A stretch of DNA of 64,000 nucleotides from Amphiscolops sp. MND2022 (lineage: Eukaryota). The position numbers and the translations under genes were made by a program. The notes below the pieces were generated by a model that made no database searches, had not been told where the DNA came from, and saw only the letters and a program-made list of their open reading frames with translations. Positions 5,216 through 64,000 of the stretch are shown one piece after another (positions within the stretch are counted from its first letter, which is position 1; every line of letters begins with the position of its first letter). Location of the stretch: positions 21,018,001-21,082,000 of the forward strand of contig OZ076415.1 in NCBI GenBank assembly GCA_964187785.1, in the 5' to 3' direction.

Positions 5216-5480
5216 CAGTTTGTAATTGCGTAAGATTATGTCTTGTTGGTGCCTCTTGTCAGTCTGAAGGCTATCTTCGGGCGTGGCGTCTCGTTTGTGT
5301 TAGATAATTTCTGTTTGAAATATGATGACGTTGTTGTTGAGTGTGGTATTTTCTGAGAATGCGGTGTTTGTTGGCGTTTGTTGGGTGGCGTTTCCTAATT
5401 TTTTTCTTCCGGGCTCGCTGTTTTCGTTCCCAGATTTGTTCCTCAGTTTTTATGTCGTCTTCAGGGAGGAAAAAGAACTA
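4230..5480 (-). pseudogene. Gypsy integrase and pol C-terminus (copies at ~1440-2421 and ~8180-9440)
   Basis: CEPSRVFHGRIPYNVFDLKF, YKQNYDRKA, and terminal PRKGKYNLRSNPPSNWKHDYAY. The core is partly deleted. Confidence 0.88.
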
Positions 5481-7806
5481 TTCCTCTTCAGTGACATCAG
5501 ATTACTGTCGGAGATTCTTAATCGGTGATGTTTCAATGTCATCACGTATCAAGAGTTGGACCTCTTCCTTGTGGTCGAGGACAAGACGCGAGAGGAAGTC
5601 CGCTGCAGTTTGATCCGGCATGGGACTTGGGCGATAGAGAAATGGAACTGCTATACATAATCGCATGCGTTCCATAGAGCTGGGAGTATTATCTTCATCT
5701 GGAAGAATCTTGTCACTTACGTGTTGTCGGTAAGGACAATCACTGGTTTAATCAACCCCCACAGGTTGTGGCTGTACTCCATAAAAGCAAAATATATTAC
5801 CAGGAACTCCTTTCCGTAGATTTACATTTTCATTCGGGCCGGAGAGAACGTTGGGAACCAAATGCATCTGGTGCGTTTGTCTTTTTGACTGATGTGATTA
5901 TATTCCGCGTTTTCCACAATCATGAAGGCGTAGCCAGCATTCTTGAAGTTTGCGTCAGTCATTAGTACACACTGCTTGCTGGGTAGGGGTTGTTTCGACC
6001 AGAGGCCACAAGCGGTGTCTACTGATTTGTTGATGTTCTTGAAATTTTCCAAGATTTTGTTCCTGACATTGATCAGCTTGTCTGCCGTCACTAATTCGTG
6101 GAATGGGGCAACTTTTTCAGACAACCTGGGAAGGTAGTTTTGTTAAAAGTTCAAAAACACGATGTATGGAGACCCTTTTTGTTTTTGGAAACGACAATTT
6201 TTGGAAGAAATTTCGGATTTTGTGTGTTTGAGGGGCGAATCCCTCTGGTGACACAGTTCGTGCAAAGAATTTGACTTCCTTGGCACCGAACTGACACTTG
6301 GCTTTTGTCAGACTCAGTCCTGCTTCTCTGACGCACTGGAAGACCTGGCGCCGGTTGGATTTCAACTCCTCGACGTTGTGGGTGGCTATCCCGATGTCGT
6401 CGACATACTGAGCGCATTTGTCAGCTTCAATGACTCTTGAGATTTTCCCTCATGAACCTCAAGACGAAAGAGAGGGATCTGCTGAGCCCTTCTGCAAGTC
6501 GCAGGTATGCGACTGTTTGACAAGCAAAATTAACGGTGCCAACAGCTTGACTGATTTCTGGTCTGCTGTTTGCGGGAGCAGTCAGAAGAACGCTTACAGA
6601 AGAACTTTTTGCCTGCCAGGTGTTGGGCAGCGTCGGAGAGTGTGCTCACGGGGTGATTATTGTTTATATTATCGTCTGCGATGAGGTTGTTGATTTTCCT
6701 CAAGTCCACAGGCAGCCAAAGCCTCCCAATTAGTTTTCTTTGCGCGAAAATTGGACTCGCGTATTTGCTGAAGTGGAGCGTTGTGATAATCCCATAGTAC
6801 TGCATTAGGGCCAACTCGACTGTCAAGTCATCCTTCAGGTGGCAGGCTGGTCTAATTTAGTTGTGAGTTTTATCTTAAACTCGTTGTTAACTCCTATGTC
6901 GAGGCGGTGCCTGGCGAAAATGTTGTTAAACTCCACGAGTATGTCTTCGATGTCTGCTCTGTTTTTCTCGTTGCGTTGTTATTCCTCCTATTTGAAGTTT
7001 GCGAGAAAAGATGCTCTGTCATTTGGACTATTGTGTGGGTTTGGTTTCTGGATTGACTCCAGTTCCTCAATCTCCCGTAAAATGCGGCTCTGGATAGGGG
7101 TGTGAGTTGCGGCATAACCTGGGTTGTCAGATATGGGGAACAACAAGTTTTGGGACGGTTGCGGTTTATCGTAGATTTGAGGAGTTCGTTGAAATACTCC
7201 ATCGCCTACTCGGAGTCGTCGTCTGCTAGGACGTTCAATGCCGCGGAATTGAGTGGGCGTAATTGTTTGGCTTTTTGTACAGAGAGGTTGTGAAAGTCTG
7301 CAACTGACGTGTTCTTTTTGAGAGTGAATGGATTAGGCGACGTATTGGTGATTCGGATTTGGATTTTAGAATTTGTTGCTGTCGAGATGGGACTTATCAC
7401 TACTATCTGGTTGTCCCTCGTGCCATGTTCTATTACGTGGACTATGTCAGTGGTGTTGGCAATTGTTATTGCCTGCTTTTATTCGTGGTGCATTGGTGGG
7501 GCATCAGCGTTAGTTGGTTTCGGATTGTTATTTTGTGGTGGTTGGGCTCCGCTTCGTTCTCGTCCGTTGTGATGGCGTATGTTAGGTGGGGAAATGGTAA
7601 TATCACACTGTTGTTTTTCAAGAATGTCAGTCCAAGGAGTGGTCCTGTTATTTTGGTGGCAACGAGGAGAGTTTCCTTGAAAATTCAGTCGCCAAATGCG
7701 AATTGGAGCGGACTGTGTTCGTGGGGGCCTCGATGTTGCCGGTTGCGTCCTGGAGTTTAAATAATGGGGCTCCATCTTTGAAAATGTTGTCGGGGTTATT
7801 TAGATT
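5480..7806 (-). pseudogene. Gypsy protease C-half, dUTPase-fold-like spacer, RT and RNase H (copy 1)
   Basis: TGPLLGLTFLKNN; ITNTSPNPFTLKKNTSVADF; KYASPIFAQRK; YVDD at ~6398-6409; AGLSLTKAKCQFG; LMTDA. Confidence 0.9.
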
Positions 7807-9442
7807 TAAACATGACGCATTCGGGTTGATGTGAAAAATTTGAACTGTAATTTTTGAGGTTGTAATTTGTATTTCTTTCTGTTTATACTATTATTGTACC
7901 CCGTATTTCGTCTGTGCCGATGGGTCTGTTGTTTAATTGAACAAAAAATGAAGAATACGTTACTCAGAAATGAAAGGGATTAGCCAAAGGTCCTGGAAAG
8001 AAACTCACTGAAGGAGCCTTCTGTAATTCATTGTTCTGCTCCTCGAATACGTTCTCTCTTCAATTGTAGTTGAGTGTGATGAATAAGTAAGTCAGGCGTA
8101 GGAAGTAGAATAAGAAAGTAGTCTAAGTGTGCCATATCACGAATTCAATGTAAGAGTTCATTCGCGTAAAATGGCTTCTACTGGGCTGTAATATGCGAAA
8201 TCGTGTTTCCAGTTGGATGGTTGGTTACTACGTAGGTTGTTTATTCCTTTTCGTGGGAAACTAGGTTCCGGGTTTGAGTTGGGTTCTGGGCTTTGGCTGT
8301 TGTGTTTGGTTGGGATATACGAAGCTTTGTCCTCGGTAGTGTCTTCTGAGCCGCCGACCCTCTCAGGCTGGATCTTAGTGTGTTCGTCGTTAGGGGGACT
8401 GTTTTTAGGCTAACAAAGTGTTCAAATCCTGATTACCACGCGAGGCCATATAGGTCGTCGTTGAGAAGTTCAACCTTGTTATCGGGTTGGAAATGTTCCG
8501 CTTGGACATGGTTGTTGGGTAGGCTTGCTCATTTGCCTGTGGGTGTAGGGCGTAGCAGTAGTCGTTGGTTTCCAGCGGGTGAAATGAAGCTTTCCTATCG
8601 TAGTTTTGCTTGTACCGTATGTACGAGTGTACAAGGTGCTTCTTCACTGACTCATGGATCAGGCGATTTTCTGGGGAACTTCTTCCTCGGCGTCTGTTGT
8701 CGGTTTCTTGGGGTGACTCTGTTTATGTCGAAACTTCAAGTCAAGGACATTTTAGGGTATTCTGCCGTGGAATACCCTACTGGGCTCGCAATCCAGTGTC
8801 GAGTGGAAGAAGTGTTGTACTTGAGCGTTGCGATGGGCACAATTTGGTGTCACATTGTTCGCCGCTCCCCTGTTGAGACTTTGAGGGCTTCTTTCAATGA
8901 GACAACGCTCCAGGATGCTGATGGTCTATGCGTGTTTGGCCGTGGCGTGTCTCAATTAGATGCCCAGGTCGCGAGTTGTGTCGGCCATTACACCGGACAT
9001 AAATTTGTTCCTTTGTCCAGGTTCGAGCAGGAGCACCTGTAAGTACCAGATTTTCCCTGTCTTCCCGAAATACTGTCGATATAACATCGCGTCCTCAAGA
9101 ATGATTCGGGCTTCTTGGGTCGTGTACTGCAGTGCTCTCTTGTCAGTTGCCATGAGCTGTTCATCGTATGGTTCCTTCAGCAGTTTGTAATTGCGTAAGA
9201 TTATGTCTTGTTGGTGCCTCTTGTCAGTCTGAAGGCTATCTTCGGGCGTGGCGTCTCGTTTGTGTTAGATAATTTCTGTTTGAAATATGATGACGTTGTT
9301 GTTGAGTGTGGTATTTTCTGAGAATGCGGTGTTTGTTGGCGTTTGTTGGGTGGCGTTTCCTAATTTTTTTCTTCCGGGCTCGCTGTTTTCGTTCCCAGAT
9401 TTGTTCCTCAGTTTTTATGTCGTCTTCAGGGAGGAAATAGAA

Positions 9443-11856
9443 CTATTCCTCTTCAGTGACATCAGATGACTGTAGGAGATTCCTAATCGGTGATATTTCA
9501 ATGTCATCGCGTATCAAGAGTTGGACCTCTTCCTTGTGGTCGAGGTCAAGACGCGAGAGGAAGTCCGCTGCAGTTTGATCCGGCATGGGACCTGGGCGAT
9601 AGAGAAATGGAACTGCTATACATAATCGCATGCGTTCCATAGAGCTGGGAGTATTATCTTCATCTGGAAGAATCTTGTCACTTACGTGTTGTCGGTAAGG
9701 ACAATCACTGGTTTAATCAACCCCCACAGGTTGTGGCTGTACTCCATAAAAGCAAAATATATTACCAGGAACTCCTTTCCGTAGATTTACATTTTCATTC
9801 GGGCCGGAGAGAACGTTGGGAACCAAATGCATCTGGTGCGGTTGTCTTTTTGCCTGATGTGATTCTCTTCAGCGTTTTCCTCAATCATGAATGCGTAGCC
9901 AGCATTCTTGACGTTTGCGTCAGTCATTAGTACACACTCCTTGCTGGGTAGGGGTTGTTTCGACCAGAGGCCACAAGCGGTGTCTACTGATTTGTTGATG
10001 TTCTTGAAATTTTCCAAGATTTTGTTCCTGACATTGATCAGCTTGTCTGCCGTCACTAATTCGTGGAATGGGGCAACTTTTTCAGACAACCTGGGAAGGT
10101 AGTTCTGTTAAAAGTTCAAAAACCCGATGTATGGAGACCCTTTTTGTTTTTGGAAACGACAATTTTTGGAAGAAATTTCGGATTTTGTGTGTTTGAGGGG
10201 CGAATCCCTCTGGTGACACAGTTCGTCCAAAGAATTTGACTTCCTTGGCACCGAACTGACACTTGGCTTTTGTCAGACTCAGCCCTGCTTCTCTGACGCA
10301 CTGGAAGACCTGGCGCCGGTTGGATTTCAACTCCTCGACGTTGTGGGTGGCTATCCCGATGTCGTCGACATACTGAGCGCATTTGTCAGCTTCAATGACT
10401 TTTGAGATTTTCCCTCATGAACCTCAAGACGGAAGAGAGGGATCTGCTGAGCGCTTGTGCAAGTCACAGGTATGCGACTGTCCGACAGGCAAATTTAACA
10501 GTGCCAACAGCTTGTCTGATTTCTGGTCTGCCGTTTGCGGGAGCAGTCAGAAGAACGCTTACAGAAGAACGTTTTGCCTGCCAGGTGTTGGGCAGCGTCG
10601 CAGAGTGTGCTCACGGGATTATTATTGTTTATATAATCGTCTGCGATGAGGTTGTTGATTTTCTTCAAGTCCACAGGCAGCCAGAGCCTCCCAATTAGTT
10701 TTCTTTGCGCGAAAATTGGACTCGCGTATTTGCTGAAGGGGAGCAATGTGATAATCGCATAGCACTGCATTAGGGCCAACTCGACTGTCAAGTCATCCTT
10801 CAGGTGGCAGGCTTGTCTGATTTAGTAGTGAGTTTTATCTTGAACTCGTTGTTAACTCCTATGTCGAGGCGGTGCCTGGCGAAAATGTTGTTAAACTCCA
10901 CGAGTATGTCTTCGATGTCTGCTCTGTTTTTCTCGTTGCGTTGTTATTCCTCCTATCTGAAGTTTGCGAGAAAAGATGCTCTGTCATTTGGACTATTGTG
11001 TGGGTTTGGTTTCTGGATTGACTCCAGTTCCTCAATCTCCCGTAAAATGCGGCTCTGGATAGGGGTGTGAGTTGCGGCATAACCTGGGTTGTCAGATATG
11101 GGGAACAACAAGTTTTGGGACGGTTGCGGCTTATCGTAGAATTGAGGAGTTCATTGAAATACTCCATCGCCTACTCGGAGTCGTCGTCTGCTAGGACGTT
11201 CAATGCCGCGGAACTGAGTGGGCGTAGTTGTTTGGCTTCTTGTACAGAGAGGATGTGAAAGTCTGCAACTGACGTGTTCTTTTCGAGAGTGAATGGATTA
11301 GGCGACGTATTGGTGATTCGGATTTGGATTTTAGAATTTGTTGCTGTCGAGATGGGACTTATCACTACTCTCTGGTTGTCCCTGGTGCCTTGTTCTATTA
11401 CGTGGACTATGTCAGTGGTGTTGGCAATTGTTGATGCCTGCTTCTATTCGCGGTGCATTGGTGGGGCATCAGCGTTAGTTGGTTTCGGATTGTGATTTTG
11501 TGGTGGTTGGGCTCCGCTTCGTTCTCGTCCGGTGTGATGGCGTATGTTAGGTGGGGAAATGGTAATATCGCACTGTTGTTTTCCAAGAATGTCAGCCGAA
11601 GGAGTGGTCCTGTTATTTTGGTGGCAACGAAGAAAGTTTCCTTGAAAATTCAGTCGCCAAATGCGAATTGGAGCGGACTGTGTTCGTGGGGGCCTTGATG
11701 TTGCTGTTTGCGTCCTGGAGTTTGAATAATGGGGCTCCATCTTTGATTATGTTGCCGGGGTTAATTAGATTTGATTTTGTCGAGCTCACTCTCGGGGAGG
11801 CAATGAACTAAAGCTCTTGAATCAATGAGTGCATCCATTGACAAATACGTGAAATA
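9443..11856 (-). pseudogene. Gypsy protease, spacer, RT and RNase H (copy 2)
   Basis: Same motifs as copy 1, plus the protease active-site segment DALIDSRA near 11830 (DSG altered to DSR). Confidence 0.9.
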
Positions 11857-12669
11857 GAACTATTCCTCTTCAGTGACATTAGATGACTGAAGGAGATTCT
11901 TAATCGGTGATGTTTCATTGGCATCACGTATCAGGAATTGGACCTCTTCCTTGTGGTCGAGGTCAAGACGCGAGAGGAAGTCCGCTGTAGTTTCATCCGG
12001 CTTGGGACATGGGCGATAGAGAAATGGAACTGCTATACATAATCGCATGCGTTCCATAGAGCTGGGAGTATTATCTTCATCTGGAAGAATCTTGTCACTT
12101 ACGTGTTGTCGGTAAGGACAATGACTGGTTTAATCAACCCCCACAGGAAGTGGCTGTACTCCATAAACGCAAAATATATGGTGGACGAGCACTGGTATTT
12201 CGGTGTCGTGTTCTTCTTCAGCCTGCAGTGCGGTAGTGCATGACTTGTTTCGTCCTTTAGTTGTCCAGTCGTGGAGAGGTTCATGTTGGTTCGTTTGGCG
12301 AATTCGTGACAAGGCACGTTTGTGGTTTGTCTGAAGATAAGTTTTTCTACGTCGTAGATCGTTCGGTTGTGATATGGGTCACAGTCGAAGTCAGTGTCAT
12401 GGATATAAGTTTCAGGGGTGGTGCTGGGTATCAGGGGTCTTCTGGTAGAATTATAGAAAGTGGGGTTTTGGACGTACCAATCAGGGTAGGGAAGCTTGTC
12501 TAGTGTATTCTTGTTAATTTTGATGATGATGAGCCTCCTGATGAGCTATCTTCGCTGCCAGTCGGTTCATGGTTCTCCGTTACACTCCATGAAGATCAAA
12601 TTCCCTCGAGGTTCAAATGTGGTGTAGAATCTGAAGTCTGCATAATCCCCGAAGCCAAGACGTGGCTTT

Positions 12670-14045
12670 AGGAGTTTTTTGTTCGTTGGCTTGGGGTGCC
12701 ACGGCTTGTTGCTGCTGGATCATTTCCTGAGTCCGTTTCAGGGGGATAAAAATATCATTTGTTGGAGTAGTTTTTGGTGTTTTCAACCACGTTGGGTGGT
12801 ATGCCCAGTAGCATGAGTAGCAATCTTTAGTCCCGTGACTCAGTTCGCCACATGTTTCGCATGGGGTTGTTATTGTGGAGCTAGCTGGGTTTTGTGTTCG
12901 TTTATCTCGGTTGGGTTTTCTGCACTTACGAAAAAAGGTGTCCCGGGTGGCCACAGCCAAAGCATGGGCCTATTATCTTTTGTGAGCACTCCTGGCACGG
13001 GTTGGGGGAATGTTCATTGTTGTTGATGCTTGCGAATGAGGTCGTCTCCGGGGCTGCGAGTCCGTTCAACTCCATTTCTTTTTCGAGATGCTGGACCATT
13101 GTTTCGTATGAGGCGGCTCTAATCTGGCTTGGTTGAGGACACTTTTTAATGGTTGGGTTTTTTGGCTTAGAACGATGTTTCTATGAATCGTGGGGCATCG
13201 TCTGCGTAAGCCTCTTGTGCGAACTTCTGGTATATTCCGAGGAAGTCTTGGAAGAATTGGGTTGTTGGGTCGAAAGTTATAGTTTTCCATTTGTAGCGCG
13301 CCGTTGCCACTGATTAGGATTTTACGTACCTTCTGCGAAGTCCTGCTATGACGTTTTGCAGGTAGGTTTTTGTAGAGCCGTCATGCTGCGGAAAGTACGG
13401 AGTGCGTCACTCTTCAACAGGGAATAGAAGTAGTGGAGTTTTTCTTCCTCGATTTTATTTGGGTGGACAATTAGGCGTGTTTGGAACAAGTCTTCGAAAT
13501 GCTCGAACTTGTCCGTTTTGCCGTCGAACATAGGCATCGTTTTAGAAAGTGCTTTCGGCGGGACAGATGGTTGTCCCGTCTGCTAGCGGGAGAAAGGGAT
13601 TCGAGGAGTTTCGTCTGAGTTCCTCTGGTTTGGAGGCAGTAGGCTTGATGAACGGGTGTGGGGGTGGGGTTGGGCCCAATTAATGACTCCGTCACCATGT
13701 TGTGACTAAATTTTTTATTCAAGTCTGTTTTGTCTAGATCTTCAACGACATTTTTTTCGTTTGGTTCCGTTCTAACCGTCGAACAACCTTGTTCTTATGG
13801 GGTGTTCGAAAGAATATCAACCTTTCATGAGAGATTCTCTATCAATCGCAGGATTTGTCTCTGTCCAAATTCTGTGTTCCTCAATCTCTTAAATGATAGG
13901 TTTTCAATTTTGCCTGATAAGTCCTCAAAGTCACGTTCCGAGATACACAGATTTCCTTCATCTGCCGAAGGGCATAGTGTTTCGCTCTTCCGGATTACTA
14001 GTAGGATCACTCTTCAGCTTTAGTTTCTGAGATTTTTCCGATATG
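12670..14045 (-). pseudogene. Gag of element A, with 5' part inside the LTR
   Basis: ISERDFEDLSGKIEN..GQRQILRLIENLS (13825-14010), then SHN-MVTES across the LTR/PBS junction, then the capsid-like FDGKTDKFEHFEDLFQT, then a CCHC knuckle. Confidence 0.85.
13685..13697 (-). promoter_or_regulatory. Primer binding site of element A (TGGTGACGGAGTC)
   Basis: Starts with TGG directly after the ...CACAACA LTR end (plus-strand tgttgtg at 13698). Same layout as element B. Confidence 0.75.
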
Positions 14046-14200: not shown

Positions 14201-15219
14201 GAATCATTTTCGAATAAAATTGAAGATTGTCAAACGGTTTTCAAAATCAAATACTGATTCAAGTCGAGATGCGAAAGTTTTGATTTCCCTAATCCCACTC
14301 CAGATACTTATAGTTTACGCTAGACACGCAGGATAAATCTCGTGCGTGAATTCACACCTCGTTCAAATCGGCGTCCTTTCCGAAGCGCGGAAGTCGAAAT
14401 AAGATAGGTTTCATCGGGACTCGACGTTCAGCGTCATCTCACTTCTACGAAAAAGTGGGAATCAACTTCCTTCGAAACCCCATTTGGCGTCCCTTTCCCC
14501 TTCATTCTTCGCCCGTTCGAGACAATATAAAAATAGTATGTAATGATAAATTAATACATTCACTGTTATTAATTACGTGAACAAACAGCTGCTAGGTTGT
14601 CACAGCGGTTGGCTCAGATCTCAACCTTAATAGGATTCAAAATGGCATCAGATTAGCATCATCATTCATTTACATGCATCACAAACCTTCCATTAAAGCT
14701 CTTTTAGGCAGGGTTTTTACATTTGTCATGTTAAAATTCATCGCATCCTTCATTTGCACAGTTGAATGTTCTAATCGAGCAGCGAGGCAATTGTCCCAGC
14801 TTCTATCGACAGCTAAGCTGTTGGGGACTGCTACTCATCTTACTTAGCATTTTAGCGCTTAACGCTGATTGGTCAATTAATTTCGCCATTACTCAGCGCT
14901 TGTACTCACTGTTCTCGTCTGAACTGCCCTCCAGTCAGCGCGCTAGCTGAATTAAATTCAGTCAACGCGCTGGATGTTTGACTACAAATAAACACTGTGC
15001 TTGATGTTATTCACATATTTTTGTAACTTAGGTACTGCGCTGAATTCTTCATCGCTAATAATAGACTATTTACATAAGTATTCATATGATAAAAAGTTGT
15101 TTGTTGGTGTTTTCGTTTTCAGGTTGGTGATGACTCTTGCGTTTCCTTCTGGTTAGTTTGTTTACATCCTCGGGCGTTCTCTCTCCAGAATTGCGCATCT
15201 CTGTGGGGGCTGCGACAAT

Positions 15220-17013
15220 AATCCTATTTTTTTTTAAATGACTGTCAGTTTTGATCACGGAGAAAATTTGCGTTCAAATTTGATCACGGAGAAAATTTGC
15301 GTTCAAATAGGGGCCAACTTATATGATTTTGGCTTGTTTCAAGCGTGAATTCCTGCTATTTTGGACAATATTATCAAAAAAACCGGGGTATTTTTGCCTG
15401 ACATGTAAAAACAGTTGTTTAGACAATCCTCTAAGGTTTTACTTTTATATCATTTTTCTCCTTCGTGAAATATTTTTAGTCAAGAACAAAATGTGCTTTC
15501 GTTTTGGGGGGGGGGTGTCATTCGCAACAAGGTGTACCTGGGGGGGGGGGAAATTGAATACATGGTCCAAAAGTGCTCATATATGTTTGAGGATTTGAGG
15601 TTTGGATCGAAAAGGAACTTACTCTTTGGTTGGTCTGGTAAATGAGTATAATGGACGAAACACGTCTTTGTTTATTGGGAAAGGCTATCTAGATGAAAGA
15701 AATTTCCAGGGTCTTCTCTTTCCTTGAATGTGGAATAAAATGATAATGTAAAGGTAGGCAAAATAAAGAAATTCATGTACAAGTTTTTCAAATACAGGCG
15801 CAACAGCTATTTCTCAGAAATGCAATACTGGTTCGCTTATAATAATGTGCACTCGCTCGATACAGATTTGCCGTAGCTGTACGTAATTGATTCCACTCCC
15901 AGTAGATACGAAAGACAGTTCCTACCGTACCTCTGCGAAAATTTCACTTATATATGAATAGTGATGCTTAATTTTTGTTTGCCGAAGCTAAGCTTGTTGC
16001 GTCGTACAGTTGAACATCAAGCAAAGCTACGGCAATAAGTGCACGAACATCTCATTTTCTTTTGAGAAAAAAACAATGGTGAAAGAATTGTTATAAGAAC
16101 ATGCTCTATAACAATTCTGAACACAGTACTGTGTTCAAATTTTGAACAATCTAAATCTAAGCGAGCGTCATTTTTTGACAAAATGAAAACTTGTCAGCTA
16201 ACTTCGTTGGTTTCAAAATAGGTATAGTAGAGAAAGACAACGTTTTGAACTGTAATACTGGTGGCTAGTAGAAGCAAATACACTAAAATAACAAGACGCA
16301 ACTGAAGCACGAACTGCAATAAAAAATTGTCTGCTGTAAACGTTGTACCTTCGGTTCAGATCTCTAACTTTTGAACTAACGCTTTTCTGAAATGCCCTCA
16401 TTAGGAATTTACACTACAAAATGGATAACAAATTGCGAATTCTTCAGTTTTTTCGTCGAAACAATATTTTTAGCAGTAAAAACTGACGAATTCGCAATCT
16501 TCAACTCTGAACATTTTTTCTGGAAATGCTTTCTTGAGAAGTGAACATGCTCACTTCTCAAGAAAGCATTTCCAGGAAAAGTGTTCAAAATGAAGGGGGA
16601 ATGAGACAGAAGGTTCAAATACCATTATGTCGACATAGTTTGCGTTGAAATTTTGGTCCAATAAAATAACTGATGTCGAAAAAATCCTATTTTTTACATT
16701 GACTGTCAGTTAAAAGTTGCCCATTAGATTTTATAGCGGACCAAGTTTGCGCTGAAATATTGCACTTTTTATACGATTTTAGCTTGTTCCAAACGTGAAT
16801 TTCGGCTATTTTGGACGGTAATATCAAAAAATTATGGTATTTTTTTGCCTGAAATGTCCAAACATTTGTAGAGACAATCCTCTAAGTATTTACATTCATC
16901 TAATATTCTCTTATTAGTGAAATATTTTCATTTAGGAGTAAAATGTGCTTTCGTGTTGGGGAAAAATTCCCAACAAGGTTTACATGGGGGGAAATAGATG
17001 ACATGGTCCAAAA
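15220..17013. repeat. Diverged ~340-bp direct repeats (15220-15572 and 16683-17013) inside the 3,148-bp unit
   Basis: Shared blocks aatcctattttt..gactgtcagtt, cgtgaatt..ctattttggac, agacaatcctctaag, aaaatgtgctttcgt, caacaaggt and acatggtccaaaa in the same order. Repeated in copy 2. Confidence 0.8.
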
Positions 17014-19098
17014 TGAACGTTGACGAACGGTGTCAAAGCTACAAATTTGATTGCCAGATTATTATTTTCTGGCCAGTAGTTTTTGAGATATTGCGTGATA
17101 AAAGTCAAAATTACCCGCCTTTATCTTCTGTATAGTGAGTTTTCTATTCTGGTTTTCGTTAGCAAAAGAAATTACGTTGCGAGCTGATGGAGTAAATTGA
17201 ACCCAATTGATATTGGAACGGTTTCATCTTGGGTGTTCAGAGTACTGGAGTCATTACTACTGGGTAATAAGTTTATAGTAGGGAATTCTTCATTGACGTC
17301 GTATAAAGAGTTAAGATATGCTCTGATCACTTAAATTGGAGTCAAATTGAATCATTTTCGAATAAAATTGAAGATTGTCAAACAGTTTTCAAAATCAAAT
17401 ACTGATTCAAGTCGAGATGCGAAAAATATGATTTCCCTAATCCCACTCCAGATACTTATAATTTACGCTAGACACGCAGGATAAATCTCGAAAGTGAATT
17501 CACGCCTCGTTCAAATCGGCGTCCTTTCCGAAGCGGGGAAGTCGAAATAAGATAGGCTTCATCGGGACTCGACGTTCAGCGTCATCTCACTCCTACGAAA
17601 AAGTGGGAATCAACTTCCTTCGAAACCCCATTTGGCGTCCCTTTCCCCTTCATTCTTCGCCCGTTCGAGACAATATAACAAATAGTATGTAATGATAAAT
17701 TAATACATTCACTGTTATTAATTACGTGAACAAACAGCTGCTAGGTTGTCACAGCGGTTGGCTCAGATCTCAACCTTAATAGGATTCAAAATGGCATCAG
17801 ATTAGCATCATCATTCATTTACATGCATCATAAACCTTCCATTAAAGCTCTTTTAGGCAGGGTTTTTACATTTGTCATGTTAAAATTCATCGCATCCTTC
17901 ATTTGCACAGTTGAATTTTCTAGTCGAGCAGCGAGGCAATTGTCCCAGCTTCTATCGACAGCTAAGCTGTTGGGGACTGCTACTCATCTTACTTAGCATT
18001 TTAGCGCTTAACGCTGATTGGTCAATTAATTTCGCCATTACTCAGCGCTTGTACTCACTGTTCTCGTCTGAACTGCCCTCCAGTCAGCGCGCTAGCTGAA
18101 TTAAATTCAGTCAACGCGCTGGATGTTTGTCTACAAATAAACACTGTGCTTGATGTTATTCACATATTTTTGTAACTTAGGTACTGCGCTGAATTCTTCA
18201 TCGCTAATAATAGACTATTTACATAAGTATTCATATGATAAATAGTTGTTTGTTGGTGTTTTCGTTTTCAGGTTGGTGATGACTCTTGCGTTTCCTTCTG
18301 GTTAGTTTGTTTACATCCTCGGGCGTTCTCTCTTCAGAATTGCGCAGCTCTGTGGGGGCTGCGACAATAATCCTATTTTTTTTAGATTGACTGTCAGTTT
18401 TGATAACGGAGAAAATTTGCGTTCAAATTTGATCACGGAGAAAATTTGCGTTCAAATAGGGGCCAACTTATATGATTTTGGCTTGTTTCAAGCGTGAATT
18501 TCTGCTATTTTGGACAATATTATCAAAATAACCGGGGTATTTTTGCCTGACATGTAAAAACAGTTGTTTAGACAATCCTCTAAGGTTTTACATTCATATC
18601 ATTTTTTCTCCTTCGTGAAATATTTTTAGCCAAGAACAAAGTGTGCTTTCGTCTTGGGGGGGTGCCATTCGCAACAAGGTGTACCTGGGGGGGGGAATTG
18701 AACACATGGTCCAAAAGTGCTCATATATGTTTGAGGATTTGAGGTTTGGATCGAAAAGGAACTTACTCTTTGGTTGGTCTGGTAAATGAGTATAATGGAC
18801 GAAACACGTCTTTGTTTATTGGGAAAGGCTATCTAGATGAAAGAAATTTCCAGAGTCTTCTCTTTCGTTAAATGTGGAATAAAATGATAATGTAAAGGTA
18901 GGCAAAATAAAGAAATTCATGTACAAGTTTTTCAAATACAGGCGCAACAGCTATTTCTCAGAAATGCAATACTGGTTCGCTTATAATCATGTGCACTCGC
19001 TCGATACAGATTTGCCGTAGCTGTACGTAATTGATTCCACTCCCAGTAAATACGAAAGACAGTTCCTACCGTACCTCTGCGAAAATTTCACTTATATA

Positions 19099-55050: not shown

Positions 55051-56154
55051 TGGGCTTTTTCCCTAAAGGATCCCTACAGAATCAAAGAAGTTTTTCGCTT
55101 ACTGGTAGTCGCTGACTGAAGGGGGTCGAAATTCACTGGGGCAAAACGGAATATTTTCTCTCAAAATCGTAAAAACGCCAATTTTGTCGGTATGTTGGTC
55201 GTCACAAAGTCATAAGATAACAGATTCGTTTCGTGAATTCACAGTTAGCTCAAGGCAAAGTAATGAAAGTCTGGAATTGTGACCTGGGTAATACATGTAA
55301 TGCAGGCAATAAAACAAGGTGACTTAATATGCAAATATTTCTCAGAAATGCAACAGAGCCTCAACTAAAGAGCTGTATAAAACAAGCCACTCGCCTGTGT
55401 ATAACTTAGAGTGCATGCAAGTATGAAATGTTCTTTTGATAAGTGAATTCTACATAACAAAAATGTGTGCATGTACCTTTATTTTTGTGCATGTGAGCAG
55501 TTTTATGATACCGAAAAGCTAAAGACAACTAAAACTTCGAAGGCGTATTAATTCTGAAAATATACAATTGACGGACCATGAAAAATACAGTCCTAGTCCT
55601 GTGATAAAAGAGTGAAACCCCTGTTTGGTAATTCAATTCAGGAATTTGGAATTTCTCGAAAACTGTCAAACTTTGCAAAATATGTCAGAAATAAAAGTTT
55701 CTTGGATTTTTTACTTGTTCACATTCCTTTAACTTTGGAAGACTTAAAACAAATACGAGACAAGTTTGCAAATAATTCCTACAAAAAGAACTTCGAACAG
55801 GGTTACCCGGGTTGACCCCCATACTCAGAAATGGCGGATCATACTATGTCATAGTATGATCATGGTGGAAAATGATCATCGTAATATGATCATAGTATGG
55901 CCATATTTTGACTAGCATGGCAACGATTATGGTCATAGTATGAGTGACGATATTTGAAAAAATTCAAAAATTCGAAGTCCCCCTAGCGGAAAAACTTGAA
56001 ATTTTAAACACATCAAAAAGTGACTCATTGGCTTGTTCCTCGGTTTTGGAAGATCTAGGGTTACCTTAATGACCCGATTAGCTTTAAGGACGCTTTTCGG
56101 CACCGCGTTTCCTGAAGCCGCTGTAGGATAGGTAGGATTTTTTGGAATTTTGAG

Positions 56155-57190
56155 TTGCTGATTTCCATAATTTTGTAGCTATTTCCCCGTAATTTTTGAT
56201 AGTATTCTCAAAACAGAGACTAAATTATGCATAATTTGGGTATTCTTCGCTCTCTTTCCAAAGTGTTCGATGATTTTAGATCAAATTGATCCAGGTTTTA
56301 GATCTGATTGCTACTTCAATTGCTGATTTTCATAATTTAGCAGCTATTTTTGCCCAAGTTTTAGACATTATTCCCAATTTAGAGACGAAATTATGCATAA
56401 TTTAGATACTCTTCACTGTCTTCCCAGAGTTTTTGTTTTTAGATCAAATTGATCCAGGTTTTGGATCTGATTCCATTTTCAGTTGTTGATTATCTATAAT
56501 TTTGTAGCTATTTTCCCGTAATTTTTGATAATCTCAATACAGAGACTAAGTTATGCATAAATTGGATATTCTTCGCTGTCTTTCCAGAGTTCTCGAGGAT
56601 TTTAGATCAAAATGATCCAGGTTTAGTTATGATTCCTATTTCAGTTGCTGATTTCCATAATCTTGCAGCTATTTTGTCAAAAGTTTAGATAATATTCTCA
56701 ATATAGAGACTAATTTATGCATAATTTAGATGCTCTTCGCTGTCTTCGCATAGTTTTTGATGATTTTAGATCAAAATGATCCAGGCTTTAGATCTGATTC
56801 CTATTTCGGTTGCTGATTTCCATAATCTTGCAGCTATTTTGTCAAAAGTTTAGATAATATTCTCAATATAGAGACTAAATTATGCGTAATTTAGATGCTC
56901 TTCGCTGTCTTCCCAGAGTTTTTTTAATGATTTTAGATCAAATGGATCCAGGTTTTAGATCTGATTCCTATTTGAATTGCTTTTTTCCATAATTTTGCGA
57001 CTATTTTGAAAAGTTTTTGATATTATTCTCAGAAGAGACCAACTTTTGTATAATTTAGTTACTCTTCGCTGTCTTCCCAAAGGTTTTGATGATTTTACAT
57101 TAAATAGATCCAGGTTTCAGCTCTGATTCCTCTTTGAGTTGCCTATTTTCATTATTTGCAGTTATTTTGCTCAAGTTTTTGCTTAGATAT
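56155..57190. repeat. Satellite array, ~164-bp monomer, ~6.3 copies
   Basis: Monomer starts (ttgctgattt-like) at 56155, 56320, 56483, 56645, 56810, 56977 and 57139. Conserved gattttagatcaaa.tgatccagg.tttagatctgatt block. Confidence 0.95.
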
Positions 57191-57499
57191 TATCAGATTA
57201 GTTTGCCAGATTCCTCATTACAACGAGCATTGTTTTACATTGTGATATTAGTGCAGTAATAAATAAACCTTCATCCACTTACCAAGGTGTACAATCTTTA
57301 TTTAAATGAGAACGTATGCTTGCAGCGTATGCGACACCATCTCCAACTTTTTCCGACTCGCCCTCCTAACAACGGGCTTCTTTCTCAGTTTGTATCAATA
57401 TGAAAAATGGGTTTCAGTACGCACGGTCCTTATTAAAAATAAAAGAGAAAATTTTTAAAAATTAGCGACGAAATGAGAAATTTAGAAACTCTTCATGTC

Positions 57500-59087
57500 T
57501 TCTGAAAGCGTTCGTTTTTAGACCAGTATAACCCAGGTTTTCGATCAGATTCCTTGTTCAAGATAGTTTCCCTGATATAACAATTCTCTTTTTTCTGCAC
57601 TATGCGATTTTTCATCAATTTTTTTAAACTAAAGTTGCCCGTTTTGTTTTGAAAGGGGAACAAAGCGTTTTGCAAGCTTAGAGGGCCACTGTAGGTTTTC
57701 AAGGGTGGTAAGTATTTGCGGGATTCCGTTCAATAGTAGTGCTGATTGCGAAATATTTTTAGTTGATGATGAAGATACAACAAAAATGTCAAGAGAGAAA
57801 AAAGATTGCGGTCTTGATCGCGTCGAACGGTTCTGTTTCAGTGCGGAGAAAGTGCAGCAAAAATCTGCGGAAACTGCAGAAGGCCATTTGGTACAAAATT
57901 GGCTGGCAGTACTGTTTTTGCCGGTGCAAGTGCAAAATCCCCTAACATCTTTCCAAAGTCGAAGGTTGTTTGCTGAAGTGTTTCGGAGGCAGTGGGTCTA
58001 ACTTTCAGCACAAAAACGAGAGATTGTCTTTCGATGGAGCGCTAAAGAGTGCTTTGTGTTGGGGAGCTGATTGTATTTTTCTTTACCCGGATGTGATCCA
58101 GAATTCTTTCTTTAATAAACCTGGGTGCAAAAATGTAGCAATACCGTGTTCAGAAGTTGGGAGAAAACTAGCCGAGGCCTGTGATGTTCCATTTATGAAC
58201 AGTGGTATTAAAAAGATGGCAACTTAGAAAAGAGACAACGTTTCAACTATGTCCCATAAAAGCATCAGATTATTTAAAAATTATTTTTCAATTTTTCCAT
58301 GGTTTTGATTAGATTGAACATCACATAAATAGGCCAATGTCCAATGCGCCCAGAAAGGAGTTGAATTCTTCGTTGGGTTTTCAAGAAGACAACTCAAAAA
58401 TGCTGAAGCCCTGAAGACCTGCCAGCGATGGCGTAGCGAAAAATTGAAAATACCTTTCAATACACACAAGAATGCGATCAACATCGAAATGAAGAAAGTA
58501 CTTCTGGGTTTGAAGTCGAGCGGTTCGCTCAAGGTGCACGAGGTAATCTTGGGTGGTCTGCATTTCAAAGCTGGTGATGCCTTTCACCAGACGAGATTCT
58601 CAATAAGGGCCATGCTGTCAAGAATCCTGCGAAGAATAACGGAGGGACGTTTACCTCTTATGCGTAAGCGGCCAACGGGAGCTCAGAAAAAAAGAAGCGA
58701 CGCAGTCGGCTTGAGGTATAATAAAACATGTGGTTTGATCAATTTGCTCTCTTTCTCTCGATTCTGTTCTACATTTTTGCTGACGATCTGATGTCTCCAT
58801 TCTTTTACATGAACTTTTCTTTTTACACAAATAGATGTTTCTTGTACCAACTTGAATGTCTTGTTGGCATTTTTTACACTTAAAATTATGCTCAAATTTT
58901 TTTAGCAAAAGCGTTCTTCCATTCAAATTTTGAAGCCAACGACCTAATAGTTCAGTGGATAGATAGGCTGTGTTCAGCTTTCCAATATTCTTTGATTTGC
59001 AAATTTCGACTTTAAATTGGTATAACTTTTTTCATTATTATCATGCTCGTAGATGAATACAAGTTCACGCTGCTTGCCTTTCAACAT
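57500..59087 (-). pseudogene. Divergent zinc-finger gene remnant
   Basis: Across frameshifts: FEWKNAF..FKCKKCQQDIQVGTRNIYLC..VHVKEWRH (C-x2-C..H-x5-H). Candidate ATG at 59087. The 3' extent is uncertain. Confidence 0.45.
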
Positions 59088-59214
59088 TTTTGTCACGTCG
59101 AAGTCAGTCTTTTCCGTTGACGAAAATAAACTATTGAAACTTGGATTAAACACTTCGATATAATAGCTAAGTTCCAAACAGCTTGTGTTTAGGTATAATT
59201 TCAGTGTTGTGTCA

Positions 59215-59857
59215 ATGAACTTGCTATCAGTAAATCTGGCGCTTTGTGATGGTTTTGAAGCAAAGAAATTTGTCTCTACCTCTGGCCGTACAGCCAGCAC
59301 GTTGCTTCAGCTGCCCGACTTTTCAACATTTGACAAAAATGCGACTAAAAAAATTCGATTTACTTTGTCGATTAGAATCACTTTATGAAGAAACAGTCGA
59401 AGCTGGTTACAGTTTCTTTCCTGACGGGTTCGGGGTTCACAGTCTCAAAACACTGCGAAACAGACAAACCAACCAAGTTCTGACCGCTCCGGCTGGCATC
59501 ATGGGCAAGATCAAATCCGCTGACGAACATAATTTTGATGACCTATCCACCATAGCGCCAACTCAGATGTGTAAGTATCCTAGATTATTGGCTGGAAGTT
59601 TTCGTTTCGTCAATTCTTTATGTAATCCAAATTGCAAATATGAATTCACGTCTCTTAATGGGCTTCCTTGTGTCGAAATGAAAACATTGGAAGCTATTAA
59701 GGCCGGAGACGAGATTACAGTCTACTATAGAAAAGAGTTTTTCGAATCACTTGAATGTCGTTGTCCTCATGTGCATCTTCACGAGCAACCTTTATCCACT
59801 GTTTGTAGCCAATCACTTTCTGTAAGTCGAAGTTTTGAATCTGCTAAAGTCAAATGA
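59215..59857 (+). pseudogene. SET-domain (Suv4-20/KMT5-like) region at the start of the transposase gene
   Basis: GFGVHSLKTL, RFVNSLCNPNC, IKAGDEITVYY and post-SET CRCPH. One frameshift near 59350. Confidence 0.85.
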
Positions 59858-62265
59858 CGGCGTATTACGTTGTCAGGCTTTATGTCATTCGTCTGCGCAG
59901 AAACTTCGAAATCCTACAAGAGGAAAAGAACGGTTCTCATGGACAATTCCACTGGTGAAATTGAGGACCTGCGAGCTTCTCCTAGTCAGGACTCGAGTGA
60001 TTTTTCATGTGAGGATTCTCGACCTGAAGAACCTCTCCTCGAGCTTGAACCTGTCTGTTCTTCAACTCCAATTCATAACCGAGACCCCAGCGAAGTTTTT
60101 TCCGCTGAAAACATCGAAGAAGTGCACCAACTCTCAAGTTCAGATAGTCAATGTTCAACACTGGACATCCCATTGACTGCCCAGCCTGAAATTGGGTTGA
60201 ACAATCTCCAGTTATGTTCAACGGCAATATGTTCTAAACATCGGGCATCAGAGGCGCTCATGAACGACGTTCTGAAAGTTTTCCGTTCAAAAATCCGGGC
60301 AGAAAATTACCAGGAATGAATCGTTTCAAAAATGAAAGTAGGAAGGAATTTCTTGAAAAAACATACACCCAAGTGCCTTGTAATTGAGGTGATTTGATAC
60401 CTCTCAAGTTCGTTTTGGAATTAAAGGATATTTGTTGCCGCAATTGGAGGATTCTGAGAGAACGTTCGGGCAGGACCACATCGGAGAGTTCGAAAGATGT
60501 CAAATTGGGAAATTTCTCGATGAGAGTGGTACAGGAATCACCCTTCATCTGATAAGTTCAACTTATGGTGTCAAAATTATTCACTCATATGGTTAACATC
60601 TTTACCCCTTGTGGATGACTATCGCTGATTTACCATCGGTGTTGCGTTTTTCGTTCGACAGTATTGTTCTGGCGAACTTGTGGTTTGTTGAAGGAAAATC
60701 TGATTTCGACATTATTTTCCGATATGTCAAAAGGGAAGTATCGGACTTCGACTTTTTTCATCATGATGGTTTTTCTTATACTGTGAACATCGAATTTCTG
60801 TTTCTCAGTGCTGACAATGTTGCCAAAGCTGCCATACTCAACATGAAGCAGTTCAATGGGTTTTTTGGTTGTCATCTTTGTGAAGATGAAGGTGAAATTG
60901 TTTCACACAGTTCAAGGATTTATCCTTGCCAAAGCGTTATCAAGATGCGCACTTATGAGTCGTATCACAAAAATCTCTCTGAAGTTCAGAAACTGGAAGC
61001 TGCTGGGTTTGATCCCAGCGCAAAGTCTTTTCGTCGTCAAACGAAGGGTGTCAAGGGTATTGAGCTAAATTGATTAGGCGAAAAGTAAAGTTTTTTTCGT
61101 TTTCTTCAACCATTTAGTTCATTCACCAATCAGAGCATCTTGACTAACTCATCTTGGCGGACTTGAAACTCCTTTTTCGACTGACTTTTTCTGAAATTCG
61201 ACGCTCAATTCTCTTAGGTAAATCTCCATTGAGTTTGATCAGTGAAAGGGTACCTTTCTTCGTTACAATTGAAAACATGCATAGTTTGTTTGGGAGTTGC
61301 TAAGAACTTTTTTGTCACCTGTATTTTTCATAACAACCCGCCAAAAGAACAGTTTTAAATCAGAGAGCCCAAAATTTCAGATTGCCCTCGAGTTCCAACG
61401 ATCAGTTCGTGGCTTGGACCAAATGTCTTGTACGTTTCGCCTGTAATTACATTGGTGTTGCTGAATGAAACTCTCAGTGATTTGTTGTGGAAGTTTTCTT
61501 ATGCAATCCGAGTCCTACTGGAAACTGACAATTTTTTGATGGAATGCAATATTTTGCTCGACAATTTTTGTGTCGGCTTCGCTGCTCTGGATCAGAATGA
61601 ACAAACTTTTAATCTGCATTCGCTAAGACATTTAACCCGGCAAGTGCAAAACTATTGTCCATTGTGGACAGCGTCTTGCTTTGCTTTTGAATCGGCCCAT
61701 TACTCTCTCGTATCCACCTTCACCGGATCAGTTAACCACCTCAGATTACTGGTTGAACGTCATTTGACTAAAAAATAACTTCTTTATTCCAAGATAGACA
61801 ATGATGGGCTCTTCGACTTGACAACTGAGTTGGCGCGTGGTCGCAAGAAATTTGGATATGGTAATCTGAAGGAATCCGCAGCCGTTCTAGAACTCTCTCC
61901 GAGCTTCCTCAGTGTCAGCGAGAGAAATTGTGAACGGAGTAGCCTATGACTCCGCCAGCGATACCGAATCTGATCGCAACTCATTCATTTCATATTCCTG
62001 TGATTGCTCTGGGAAACTCTGGTTCGGCCAGATCATCGCATTTTTCCGTCTTGGTGGACGCCGATTCTGTTTAGTTGAACGATACATAGTCGAGAAAGCT
62101 TTTACTTGTCCTGGAGCTGATTTAGCCTGTGCTTACTGTCGCGTAGCAAAAACCGAAGAAAGAATCGATGTTCCATGTGACTCAATTTTCGCGAAAATGA
62201 TTGCTTTTTTCACAGATCAAGAGAAATTTTTCGTCAAACTCTCGCCACATTTCGATCACAACTGA
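59858..62265 (+). pseudogene. CACTA/EnSpm-type DDE transposase
   Basis: STYG (DG site altered); WMTIADLPSVLR; DNVAKAAILNMKQFNGFFGCHLC; MH..GV.K; TFNLHSLRHL..V...PLW..S.FAFES; FGQIIAFF. Confidence 0.88.
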
Positions 62266-62799
62266 GCGAATAAACCAACTTCTTTTGTTACACTGTAACT
62301 ATGAAGGCTTCTGAATGTTCATTAACACTTTGTTTGTCCTTGAGTCGGTTTAGCTTTTACGCTTTTTTCAGCTGACTCATGGATAAACATTGGTTTTTTG
62401 ATGCAGATTGCCTTAAAGGTCTGTTTTCTGTTCAGCCACCAAGTACATTTTCATTTATAGTTCTTTCATGATCTCAGTAGATGTTTTGAGAATCTTCCTT
62501 GGAATCTCGAATTGTTATCTCTTTAATTTTAATATTTTATGTTTCTTCATTCTATCGGTATTATGTTAAAGACCTTCAGTCGGTTTAGCTTCAAAGCTTT
62601 TATTACTGACGGAGTCTCTTACTTTGGTTTGATGTCACGTTATTATTACATTTCTCTTCATCAGTAATAAAGTTTTCGATTGCACTGTTTATCACCAACG
62701 AAGATTTTCCTTAGAACCCTTTCCTCGTAAAGAATAAGTTTGTATATTTCGCAACTTTACCTGGAAAGTTCAACAATTGTCAGTGTCTCAGAATCGTGA

Positions 62800-63930
62800 A
62801 AGACACAGAGGCTTCAGATGACAATGATTTGTCTGCGGATGCTGATGCCCCCGATAGACCGTGAACGACCACCACCTTCGAAATGACCGAAAATTGTCAA
62901 ATCGGAGCCAATTTTTGAGCAGTCCCCAGTAATGCTGAATGATCGGTCTACTCCGGCCACGTCAATTCCATGCACTTGTGACAATGTCAGCAAAGTAAGT
63001 TCATCTCGAAACTCAGATTTCACGACAAAATCTTGCGGACGGAAACTCTTCTAAACAAAACTTCGCTATAGTTCCTCAACCTGAATCCGGACCATATATC
63101 CCGATCAGTTTTTCATAAGACTTAAATAGGAGTTAGTTTTTTTATTTTTACAGTGTACGTCTAGCGCGATCCGTGAGACCCTGAAGATTTTTTCCTCGAC
63201 CATGGAGAGACTGCTCGATACACACCGCGAGTATTGGAAAGAGTAAGCTTTTTTGTCTTTTCAAATGCTATGAGAAATATCCGCTGATTTCGTTTTTTCC
63301 CACATGCTTCTCTTTTGCCTCTCATTTGACTGATCCATTCAGGCATTTAAATGGTGATTGAAGCGAGAAGTCTTGAGACAATTAGTCAAGAGACGATGAT
63401 ATATAGTTTATGAGTGTATTACTTTTTTATCAGTCGAAGTCGGTCGAGTTTTTTTTCAAAAACGTGAGAGGCCTGGAGACTGCTGAGAGAAATGAAATCT
63501 CAGTCAATGCCACTGAGTGTGAAGGTGATACTCCGAACGATGTGGCAGATCTCAGGGAAATAAAGTATAAAGGAGTGAACCTTCGAAAATTGTCTATTCC
63601 CTATGAGCCGTCAAAACATCGACGTAACATTGCGGAATATATTTTTGGCAAAAATCTAGAAAGTGAGCTCATACACAGTATGATTGAACCCGATGGTAGC
63701 GATGCCAGTCGACCCCCCGCTGATCTGCAGAAACAAGCCGACTTCAAATAACTTGTTCTGTGGGCGTATTCAAAGCGAGGCCCTGTGAAAGCGCTTTACG
63801 CCTACCAACTGGCTCGTATTTCTGCTAATCAGCGTGGCCGGGAACTCAAGACTACTATGAGAAGCCCTGGCAGTGAGGAGATCTTGGCCAGCCAAGATAG
63901 AACATGCAGTGATTTGCCTGGAAAGTGATT
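62800..63930 (+). pseudogene. Spliced BEN-domain-like accessory gene
   Basis: Donors gtaagt (~62995) and gtaagc (~63242), acceptors near 63153 and 63433. RNIAEYIFG..SRPPADLQKQADFK*LV..ARISANQRGR resembles the BEN helical pattern. Confidence 0.5.
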
Positions 63931-64000
63931 TGTCTACTTCCTGGACTTGAAACCTTTCGCTAAAAGTTCATCAGTCGGCTTAGTTTCAATGCTTTTTATG

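Follow-up and report, generated by a model that had tools for sequence, protein, structure and literature searches.

A Suv4-20-like SET module very likely fused to a CMC-type transposase in a decayed DNA transposon of Amphiscolops sp. MND2022

In the primate protein SETMAR (Metnase), an N-terminal SET lysine methyltransferase is followed by the DDE-type (Asp-Asp-Glu) transposase of the mariner element Hsmar1 in a single polypeptide. An activity on lysine 36 of histone H3 (H3K36) has been reported for it (PMC2847698). SETMAR is a single-copy host gene that arose by exon capture of a dead mariner. SET genes are also carried by transposons, namely HarbingerS, Phytophthora MuDR elements, Helitron captures and the red-alga Plavaka, where SET lies in PAG2 and is joined to a DNA methylase domain; the two accounts call SET an accessory or incorporated gene (PMC12730594; bioRxiv 10.1101/2025.02.11.637652). 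Here we analyse a 64,000-nucleotide stretch of contig OZ076415.1 from Amphiscolops sp. MND2022 (called the window; all coordinates are window positions on the + strand unless a related locus is named). Near its end lies a broken gene in which a Suv4-20-like SET module and a CMC (CACTA/Mirage/Chapaev) superfamily transposase very likely formed a single reading frame. As judged from family comparisons, the fusion is transposon-encoded, old and kept by selection.

The window gene and SETMAR share the order of a SET methyltransferase followed by a DDE transposase, and the coupling of chromatin marking to DNA-break chemistry is suggested as a logic common to both. In contrast to SETMAR, the transposase here belongs to a multi-copy element bounded by terminal inverted repeats (TIRs). 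It is a CMC enzyme, predicted to fold like RAG1, instead of a Tc1/mariner one, and its SET is Suv4-20-like, whereas that of SETMAR represents another branch with pre-SET and post-SET parts. Compared with other SET-carrying transposons, of which Plavaka also belongs to the EnSpm lineage, SET is here located within the transposase polypeptide, is of the Suv4-20 type and is found in animal assemblies. A SET-CMC transposase fusion was not found described in the full-text literature (Repbase and Dfam lie outside that search).

The alignments show that a single-exon gene of about 1015 codons, for a SET module and a CMC DDE transposase, is present at 59215-62265 in decayed form. Its parts are:

59215 to 62265, + strand: broken SET-transposase gene (15 family proteins align colinearly in tblastn, first to last residue, up to the stop codon 62263-62265; family alignment).
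59215 to 59349, + strand: N-terminal helical part of the Suv4-20-like module (frame 0; residues 1-41 of P0002 match 59221-59352; conserved L..CD motif present).
59348 to 59854, + strand: SET core (frame 1; Pfam PF00856, E 9e-9; PDB SUV420H2, E 5.6e-7; SET alignment).
59855 to 59857, + strand: in-frame TGA, a secondary mutation (AGA, Arg, is aligned in the related copies L005, L006, L007 and L009; P0003 and P0153 read through).
59858 to 60286, + strand: variable acidic/Ser-rich linker (SS(T/S)P motif from 60059, pre-catalytic block ..SKHRASE..; family alignment; dN/dS 0.23-0.30).
60501 to 61070, + strand: first part of the catalytic core (frame 2; first Asp, D1, changed to Tyr at 60564-66; TAA at 60594; second Asp, D2, at 60813-15; CxxC at 60870-81; family alignments; dN/dS 0.08-0.09).
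61074 to 61390, + strand: core segment scrambled by several short frameshifts (PxDYMH motif readable in frame 1 at about 61250-61290; compared with L009 10743-11594).
61389 to 61892, + strand: second part of the catalytic core (frame 2; H..H at 61617-31, catalytic Glu of FESA at 61689-91, TAA at 61776).
61897 to 62265, + strand: C-terminal beta-rich domain (frame 0; ends ..HFDHN followed by the stop; aligned with P0059, P0075 and P0130 over their 93-130 C-terminal residues, the last one included).

Since the E values of single tblastn segments reach 1e-29 for distant members of the 15 proteins, and are stronger still for P0002 and P0003, the match of the window to the family is far beyond chance. 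Against family members that are themselves recognized by Pfam, the window pieces gave E values of 1e-15 to 1e-29. The colinear segments extend from 59348 to 62262 and comprise SET, a gap at the variable linker, 60417-61082, 61389-61892 and 61897-62262. For the closest relatives, P0002 and P0003 (57-73% identity), the matches begin at the ATG at 59215 and continue through the TGA. This ATG is in frame 0, and a frameshift near 59350 connects it to frame 1, in which the SET open reading frame (ORF) runs from stop to stop (59234/59246-59854). A preliminary description of the stretch had stated that the SET ORF and the next ORF share a frame and are separated by one TGA (KVK*RRI), where a CGA would give an NLS-like KVKRRRI. 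The shared frame is confirmed: the TGA is in frame with the open stretch 59858-60316. An Arg codon, AGA, is present in the four related copies named in the list. Over 59730-60015, one contig built from reads matches the window exactly, the TGA at 59855 included.

The open stretch behind the TGA contains KRKR, an acidic/Ser-rich region and CSKHRASEALMNDVLKVF, which had been compared to the helical N-terminus of EnSpm transposases. The sequence does lie in the frame of the SET ORF, within a block that is conserved in the family (..SKHxxSD..) ahead of the catalytic core, but a match to plant CACTA/EnSpm helical N-termini could not be confirmed. In the fast-evolving linker, SS(T/S)P(I/V) at 60059-60073 is the only conserved island (family alignment columns ~470-480); it may be a phosphorylation or docking site. 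As had been noted, the DDE core follows after frameshifts, and the stop at 62263-62265 is exactly where full-length relatives end, the family C-terminus being F(D/E)H(N/D/S).

Five in-frame stops are found in the window copy (59855 TGA, 60385 TGA, 60594 TAA, 61071 TGA and 61776 TAA), together with at least four main frameshifts (near 59350, frame 0 to 1; 60285, to 0; 60510, to 2; 61895, to 0) and several more in 61074-61390. D1 of the family TDG motif is Tyr (TAT), while D2, CxxC, H..H and Glu are retained. In the SET domain, the second Gly of motif I, which is Gly in at least 90% of the relatives, is Val (FGV). Because of the five stops, the many frameshifts, the exchange of D1 for Tyr and the change of GxG to GV, the copy is to be considered dead and unable to function. 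No second copy of the SET-transposase gene was found within the 64-kb window, and the broken transposase pieces of the window gave no Pfam match.

The fusion itself is best seen in the relatives. When 1.84 billion representative proteins were scanned with HMMER for the window SET ORF, 203 matches were obtained, a dozen of them proteins 900-1108 aa long in which SET occupies residues ~50-200. PF00856 was detected in nine of ten family members scanned, eight of which also match DUF1258 and/or Transposase_21 further on. Some of these matches exceed the Pfam cut-offs (P0122, DUF1258, 51 bits; P0059, Transposase_21, 42 bits; P0038 is also above cut-off). More than 30 uninterrupted ORFs of 900-1108 aa from several public assemblies have the same order of SET and transposase, the same spacing and the same ends. 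Two uninterrupted fusion ORFs, of 1035 aa (L001) and 995 aa (L002), bear out the expectation of a single reading frame and demonstrate an intronless gene. In the window's own clade, P0153 is a single uninterrupted ORF of 649 aa which contains the N-terminus, SET, linker, D1, D2 and CxxC. Of 78 homologues listed for the P0038 transposase part, about 35 also carry PF00856, most of these being 900-1080 aa long. The NCBI gene LOC142355849 of the acoel Convolutriloba macropyga is one member of the family, and protein clusters of the fusion family contain up to 85 near-identical members.

Copies that lack SET had been named beforehand as evidence that would speak against a fusion. Two abundant ORFs of this appearance (P0204 and P0207) turned out to have SET immediately upstream, separated by a frameshift. 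The nearest SET-less relatives (Lingula, Saccostrea, Apostichopus) are at 25-31% identity and resemble CMC transposases of the usual kind. When the SET and transposase parts were placed in trees of their own, the same two main clades appeared in each, with P0010, P0059 and P0153 as lone branches in both. SET thus co-evolves with the transposase, which does not fit a separate host pseudogene, the other objection that had been raised.

To compare the window with L006, L007 and L009, we used the proportions of differing synonymous (pS) and nonsynonymous (pN) sites. pS is saturated (0.65-0.9), and pN is low in every part. For SET, pN is 0.19-0.27 against a pS of ~0.70, giving a dN/dS of 0.10-0.17; the values for core and linker in the list above stem from the same comparisons. 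As more than 30 uninterrupted ORFs have the same order and are colinear with the window, the two trees agree, and pN is far below pS, the fusion cannot be attributed to chance. These family comparisons show that it arose once, deep in this transposon lineage, and was inherited with the transposase under purifying selection.

The best Pfam match of the transposase part in family members is DUF1258, followed by Transposase_21. The family has a DDE triad whose second D and E are separated by a Cys/His insert, and TDG, ADxxAK, GCxxC, HSLRH and FESAN are conserved, the first three being invariant in the alignments; the DDE and zinc residues do not vary within the family. Both the Pfam matches and this insert (CxxC...H..H) are common to CMC transposases (EnSpm/CACTA, Mirage, Chapaev), and subterminal repeat clusters, large size and extra ORFs are likewise shared between CMC elements and the element described below. 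Differences to CMC elements are the termini, which are CCCRGGTTGACC here instead of CACTA/CAC, and the N-terminal SET module, which is without counterpart in the Lingula, Saccostrea and Apostichopus relatives. Because the termini are not CACTA, we assign the transposase to the CMC superfamily and not to CACTA in the strict sense. Of the label CACTA/EnSpm given previously, the superfamily is therefore retained, but the CACTA ends are not.

A structural model of residues 400-1006 of P0038 (predicted local distance difference test, pLDDT, 83) has its best matches in the RAG1 core, followed by BbRAGL and HzTransib. With RAG1, about 500 columns are aligned, zinc inserts included, at an E value of 9e-9 and a template modelling (TM) score of 0.45-0.48. 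In the ESM Atlas, the window transposase piece adjoins RAG1 RNase-H/ZnC2 clusters as well as Transposase_21 clusters. The predicted catalytic part thus resembles RAG1/Transib most closely in structure, and a ZnC2/ZnH2-like insert is common to both. However, there is no significant sequence similarity to RAG1/Transib at the Pfam level, the TM score is below 0.5, neither a RAG2-like partner nor ends resembling recombination signal sequences are present, and by sequence the protein belongs to CMC.

The SET module had been described as most similar to KMT5B/C (SUV420H1/H2), the di- and trimethyltransferases of lysine 20 of histone H4 (H4K20), and our searches agree. PF00856 is matched by the window ORF with 36.1 bits (cut-off 22.4). 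The closest solved structures by sequence are SUV420H2, with the E value listed above, and SUV420H1 (E 2e-5); for P0010, the SUV420 match reaches 3e-17. The top 8-10 PDB matches of both the window and P0010 are SUV420H2/H1, and only then do ASH1L and NSD follow (E 1e-4 to 1e-7). For a model of residues 1-230 of P0038 (pLDDT 92.6), the top 15 PDB matches are all SUV420H1/H2, with TM scores of 0.56-0.66 and alignments of 172-265 columns (mostly 218-265) that span the helical N-domain, SET and post-SET, whereas other SET proteins align over only ~110-170 columns. The model predicts the helical N-domain, SET and the post-SET zinc motif (CxCxxC) to be united in one fold, arranged as in KMT5B/C. Motifs common to KMT5B/C and the family are RFxN..CxPN and GxEIxxYY/G..FF. 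In contrast to KMT5B/C, most members have Ser in place of the NH-motif His, and the module is joined to a transposase; the identity to solved structures is ~20%.

The transposon-borne SETs are also distinct from host-like proteins. A profile of the transposon-borne module scores 160-270 bits on family members, with the N-terminal 85 columns covered, but only 67-98 bits on host-like KMT5/Set9, where the SET core alone is matched. In the SET tree, the host-like KMT5/Set9 sequences form one clade (support 100/99, with P0089) that excludes all transposon-borne SETs, P0010 being the nearest neighbour. The host sequences in this tree are fungal or unnamed, with no named animal KMT5 among them; a word-indexed search with the SET region yielded 15 proteins, mostly Mucorales KMT5/Set9-like.

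The SET motifs of the window are RFVNSLC (Asn at 59612-14, Ser at 59615-17), GDEITVYY and CRC, with the invariant SET Tyr at 59726-28 and CxC at 59756-64. In the window's clade, the third zinc Cys is replaced (CRCPHVH). Instead of the canonical NHxC, the window has NS, as had been noticed before. When the 33 ORFs of at least 900 aa were inspected, this state was found to be widespread: 26 have NS, five NH, one NN and one KS, and GxE(I/L)xVxY is kept in nearly all of them. NS occurs in three separate clades (the window clade, the P0038 clade and P0130), while P0010 and the P0075/P0115/P0053 group keep NH. Going by these distributions, NS is the family norm rather than a sign of decay. At 22-35% identity, the residues that never vary in the family are one motif I Gly, one zinc Cys, the catalytic Tyr (GxEIxVxY) and the PN-dipeptide Asn; conservation is at least 90% for the remaining motif I Gly, the NH-motif Asn and two more zinc Cys.

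In intact relatives, the intronless ORF codes for a single protein of ~1000-1100 aa. It begins with a module of Suv4-20/KMT5B-C type, made up of the helical N-domain, SET and a Cys-rich post-SET. The acidic/Ser-rich linker, which evolves fast, connects this module to the DDE core, which contains the CxxC and H..H zinc inserts and is predicted to fold like RAG1, and a beta-rich domain forms the C-terminus. The SET module would still bind S-adenosylmethionine (SAM) and most likely methylate a lysine, with H4K20 as the best guess from kinship, and would act on nucleosomes where the transposase works. Dimethylated H4K20 (H4K20me2) recruits 53BP1. By this logic, and in parallel to SETMAR/Metnase, the module could help with the repair of the element's own double-strand breaks at excision or integration; it could also tether or target the transpososome on chromatin. 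We slightly favour a catalytically active SET module. H4K20 as its substrate is a tentative assignment for which the chances are somewhat below even. The full scenario appears possible but rather doubtful: here, an autonomous animal transposon would long have used a transposase with an active Suv4-20-type H4K20 methyltransferase that, in the course of transposition, marks donor or target nucleosomes with a signal linked to repair or heterochromatin, and the exchange of His for Ser in the SAM pocket would be an adaptive retuning.

The alternative that survives best concerns this mechanism only and leaves the fusion untouched. According to it, the SET module is inactive and was kept as a chromatin-binding or targeting domain which tethers the transposase to the H4 tail or the nucleosome. 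NH is changed to NS in most intact ORFs, and to NN, KS or DL in a few; the titles of PDB entries 8t9f and 8t9h refer to non-catalytic nucleosome-binding roles for SUV420H1; and purifying selection is equally consistent with a role in binding. However, a pure binder need not retain the residues for SAM binding and catalysis, such as the NH-motif Asn, the GxEIxVxY Tyr and the motif I GG, which are invariant or nearly so despite the low identity. Moreover, the same change from His to Ser recurs in three clades and looks like tuning rather than decay. We regard an inactive module as a serious possibility, though not a probable one.

Reads offer a different explanation for the state of the window copy. 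Contigs were derived from four sequencing runs of one sample (X1-X4), which probably represent DNA because coding and non-coding parts are evenly covered and there are no splice-like joints. The contigs include the window version as well as versions that are 95-99% alike. At the frame breaks of the window, variant contigs have indels (59347 -1, 60290 +C, 60501 +A, 61282 +AC, 61386/7 +T, 61892 +CT), each of which restores the frame by simple arithmetic, and 60386 G>C turns the TGA into TCA. As these variants undo the frame breaks at the exact sites, there are less-decayed sister copies or a divergent allele or haplotype in the same animal. The same variants might suggest that the frame breaks are assembly errors and the window copy is in fact intact. 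At most break sites, however, both versions were seen or the window version is backed by another run, and the TGA at 59855 is spanned by the identical contig mentioned above. The variant contigs also carry many substitutions, as expected of sister copies or a divergent haplotype. The exchange of D1 for Tyr and the stops at 60594, 61071 and 61776 are absent among the listed variants (93 further differences lie outside this list). We thus consider assembly errors improbable as the cause.

The gene is part of a larger element. According to the alignments, 55806-64000 is the 5' 8.2 kb of a cut-and-paste DNA transposon of 14-16 kb, the 3' part of which lies beyond the end of the window. The following features were found around the gene:

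55806 to 55830, + strand: 5' TIR (CCCGGGTTGACC...; the homology start is common to three related copies, with unrelated flanks upstream).
55831 to 56131, + strand: subterminal region with a repeated ATGATCATAGTATG-like short motif (clusters of the motif occur at the 5' end in the window, L006 and L007 and, in inverted form, at the 3' end in L005).
56132 to 57193, + strand: tandem array, six units of ~165 bp (repeat finding, families D1-D4; arrays in the corresponding position of L006 and L007 share 76-82% identity with it).
57799 to 58194, + strand: remnant of accessory ORF-A, 141 aa in relatives (tblastn, 55% identity to L007 6473-6895, E 3e-46; pN 0.25-0.27 against pS ~0.8).
58369 to 58695, + strand: remnant of accessory ORF-B, 125 aa in relatives (tblastn, 64% identity, E 4e-43; pN 0.22-0.30 against pS 0.8-0.9).
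62863 to 63003, + strand: remnant of a 191-aa accessory ORF of relatives (tblastn, 49% identity over 47 aa, E 2e-9).
63407 to 63901, + strand: BEN-like accessory ORF with one stop at 63749 (68-77% aa identity to ORFs of L005-L007; pN 0.13-0.14 against pS ~0.9).

The homology of the window with L006, L007 and L009 starts at one point, CCCRGGTTGACC (window 55806, L006 3859, L007 2493, L009 2678). Its reverse complement GGTCAACCTGGG closes L005 at 17829-17840; the element has CCCAGGTTGACC ends. L005-L007 (assembly ERZ25074608), L008 and L009 lie on different contigs; identity is 93-96% among these copies and ~69% to the window. Because of the shared TIR, the differing 5' flanks and the presence of several copies of 93-96% identity at different sites, the gene is regarded as a transposon gene. 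This agrees with the preliminary description, which had assumed a transposon-encoded fusion. L001, L003 and L004 share their flanks throughout and are hence uninformative on mobility or element boundaries, and no TIRs could be detected around the intact ORF in L002.

Arrays of the ~165-bp unit are located near both element ends (L006 3859-4706; L007 2493-4877; L005 14549-17455), and their length varies between copies. In L007, a Tc1/mariner transposase (DDE_3, HTH_Tnp_Tc3_2) is found at 14879-16383 on the - strand, inside the downstream tandem-array region. ORF-A and ORF-B, which lie upstream of the transposase gene, are absent at the loci of the more distant members L001 and L002. None of the accessory ORFs, the BEN-like ORF included, had a significant match in Pfam. 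For the intact BEN-like ORF of L009, the closest ESM Atlas clusters are those of BEN domains (32 matches, score 0.95, 213 shared features). This ORF is partly duplicated within L009 (14546-14935 and 11956-12225), and BEN is a DNA-binding fold; its product could be an end-binding partner protein of the element. Elsewhere in the window, positions 1-14000 are unusual in composition, with a GC skew of +0.09 to +0.20, an AT skew of about -0.2 to -0.25 and a GC content of 45-47%, and a 25-mer found at 6094 and again at 10059 hints at a repeat of ~3.97 kb.

Several observations weigh against the interpretation of an old transposon with a working SET-transposase protein. The window's own clade is represented in the databases only by broken ORFs of up to 649 aa. 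At the P0122 locus, the flanks are identical on three contigs, and its intact ORFs may be haplotigs or a domesticated copy. Both tips of the element are present in none of the copies retrieved, as L005 is without the 5' part, L006 and L009 lack at least the last 18 bp at the 3' end, and the window stops before the 3' end; for want of such a copy, a target-site duplication is not readable. The termini are not CACTA/CAC in the window, L005, L006, L007 and L009. The host comparison set is without a named animal KMT5 by which to place the SET donor. Finally, the His of NHxC is Ser in the great majority of the long ORFs, and changes at this His can abolish activity in other SET enzymes.

The flanks of P0122 also bear on the idea that the gene is a domesticated host gene of the SETMAR type instead of a transposon gene, as does the fact that the Convolutriloba family member is annotated by NCBI as an ordinary gene. 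However, the window copy and its relatives lie within TIR-bounded multi-copy elements at different sites and decay freely, the family includes the large clusters of near-identical proteins, and the reads from the same sample contain 95-99% variants of the window copy, all of which makes a host gene very improbable. That a host Suv4-20 pseudogene or captured fragment merely came to lie beside an unrelated transposase remnant at this locus, as the stop, the frameshifts and the Pfam-negative pieces of the window might suggest, can be dismissed as next to impossible in view of the domain pairs in the uninterrupted ORFs of several assemblies, the passage from SET into the DDE core within one ORF in P0153, the colinearity of the window and the family alignment, the agreement of the trees, and the N-terminal extension of the transposon-borne SETs and their position outside the host-like KMT5 clade.

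So far, SET-carrying transposons and one fusion of SET to a dead transposase in a host, SETMAR, have been known. A living transposon lineage with a histone-methyltransferase module inside its transposase, as the family comparisons indicate here, is not reported in the papers found. The family also provides well-conserved CMC transposases predicted to fold like RAG1, which bears on the kinship of these superfamilies. As an independent, much older and multi-copy instance of the pairing of SET and transposase, the family suggests that this pairing has a functional logic, be it in break repair or in chromatin targeting, and the intact natural proteins make the idea accessible to bench experiments. 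If the module is an active H4K20 writer, the element would represent a mobile counterpart to SETMAR that occurs in nature, and its transposase would directly exemplify chromatin editing in cis.

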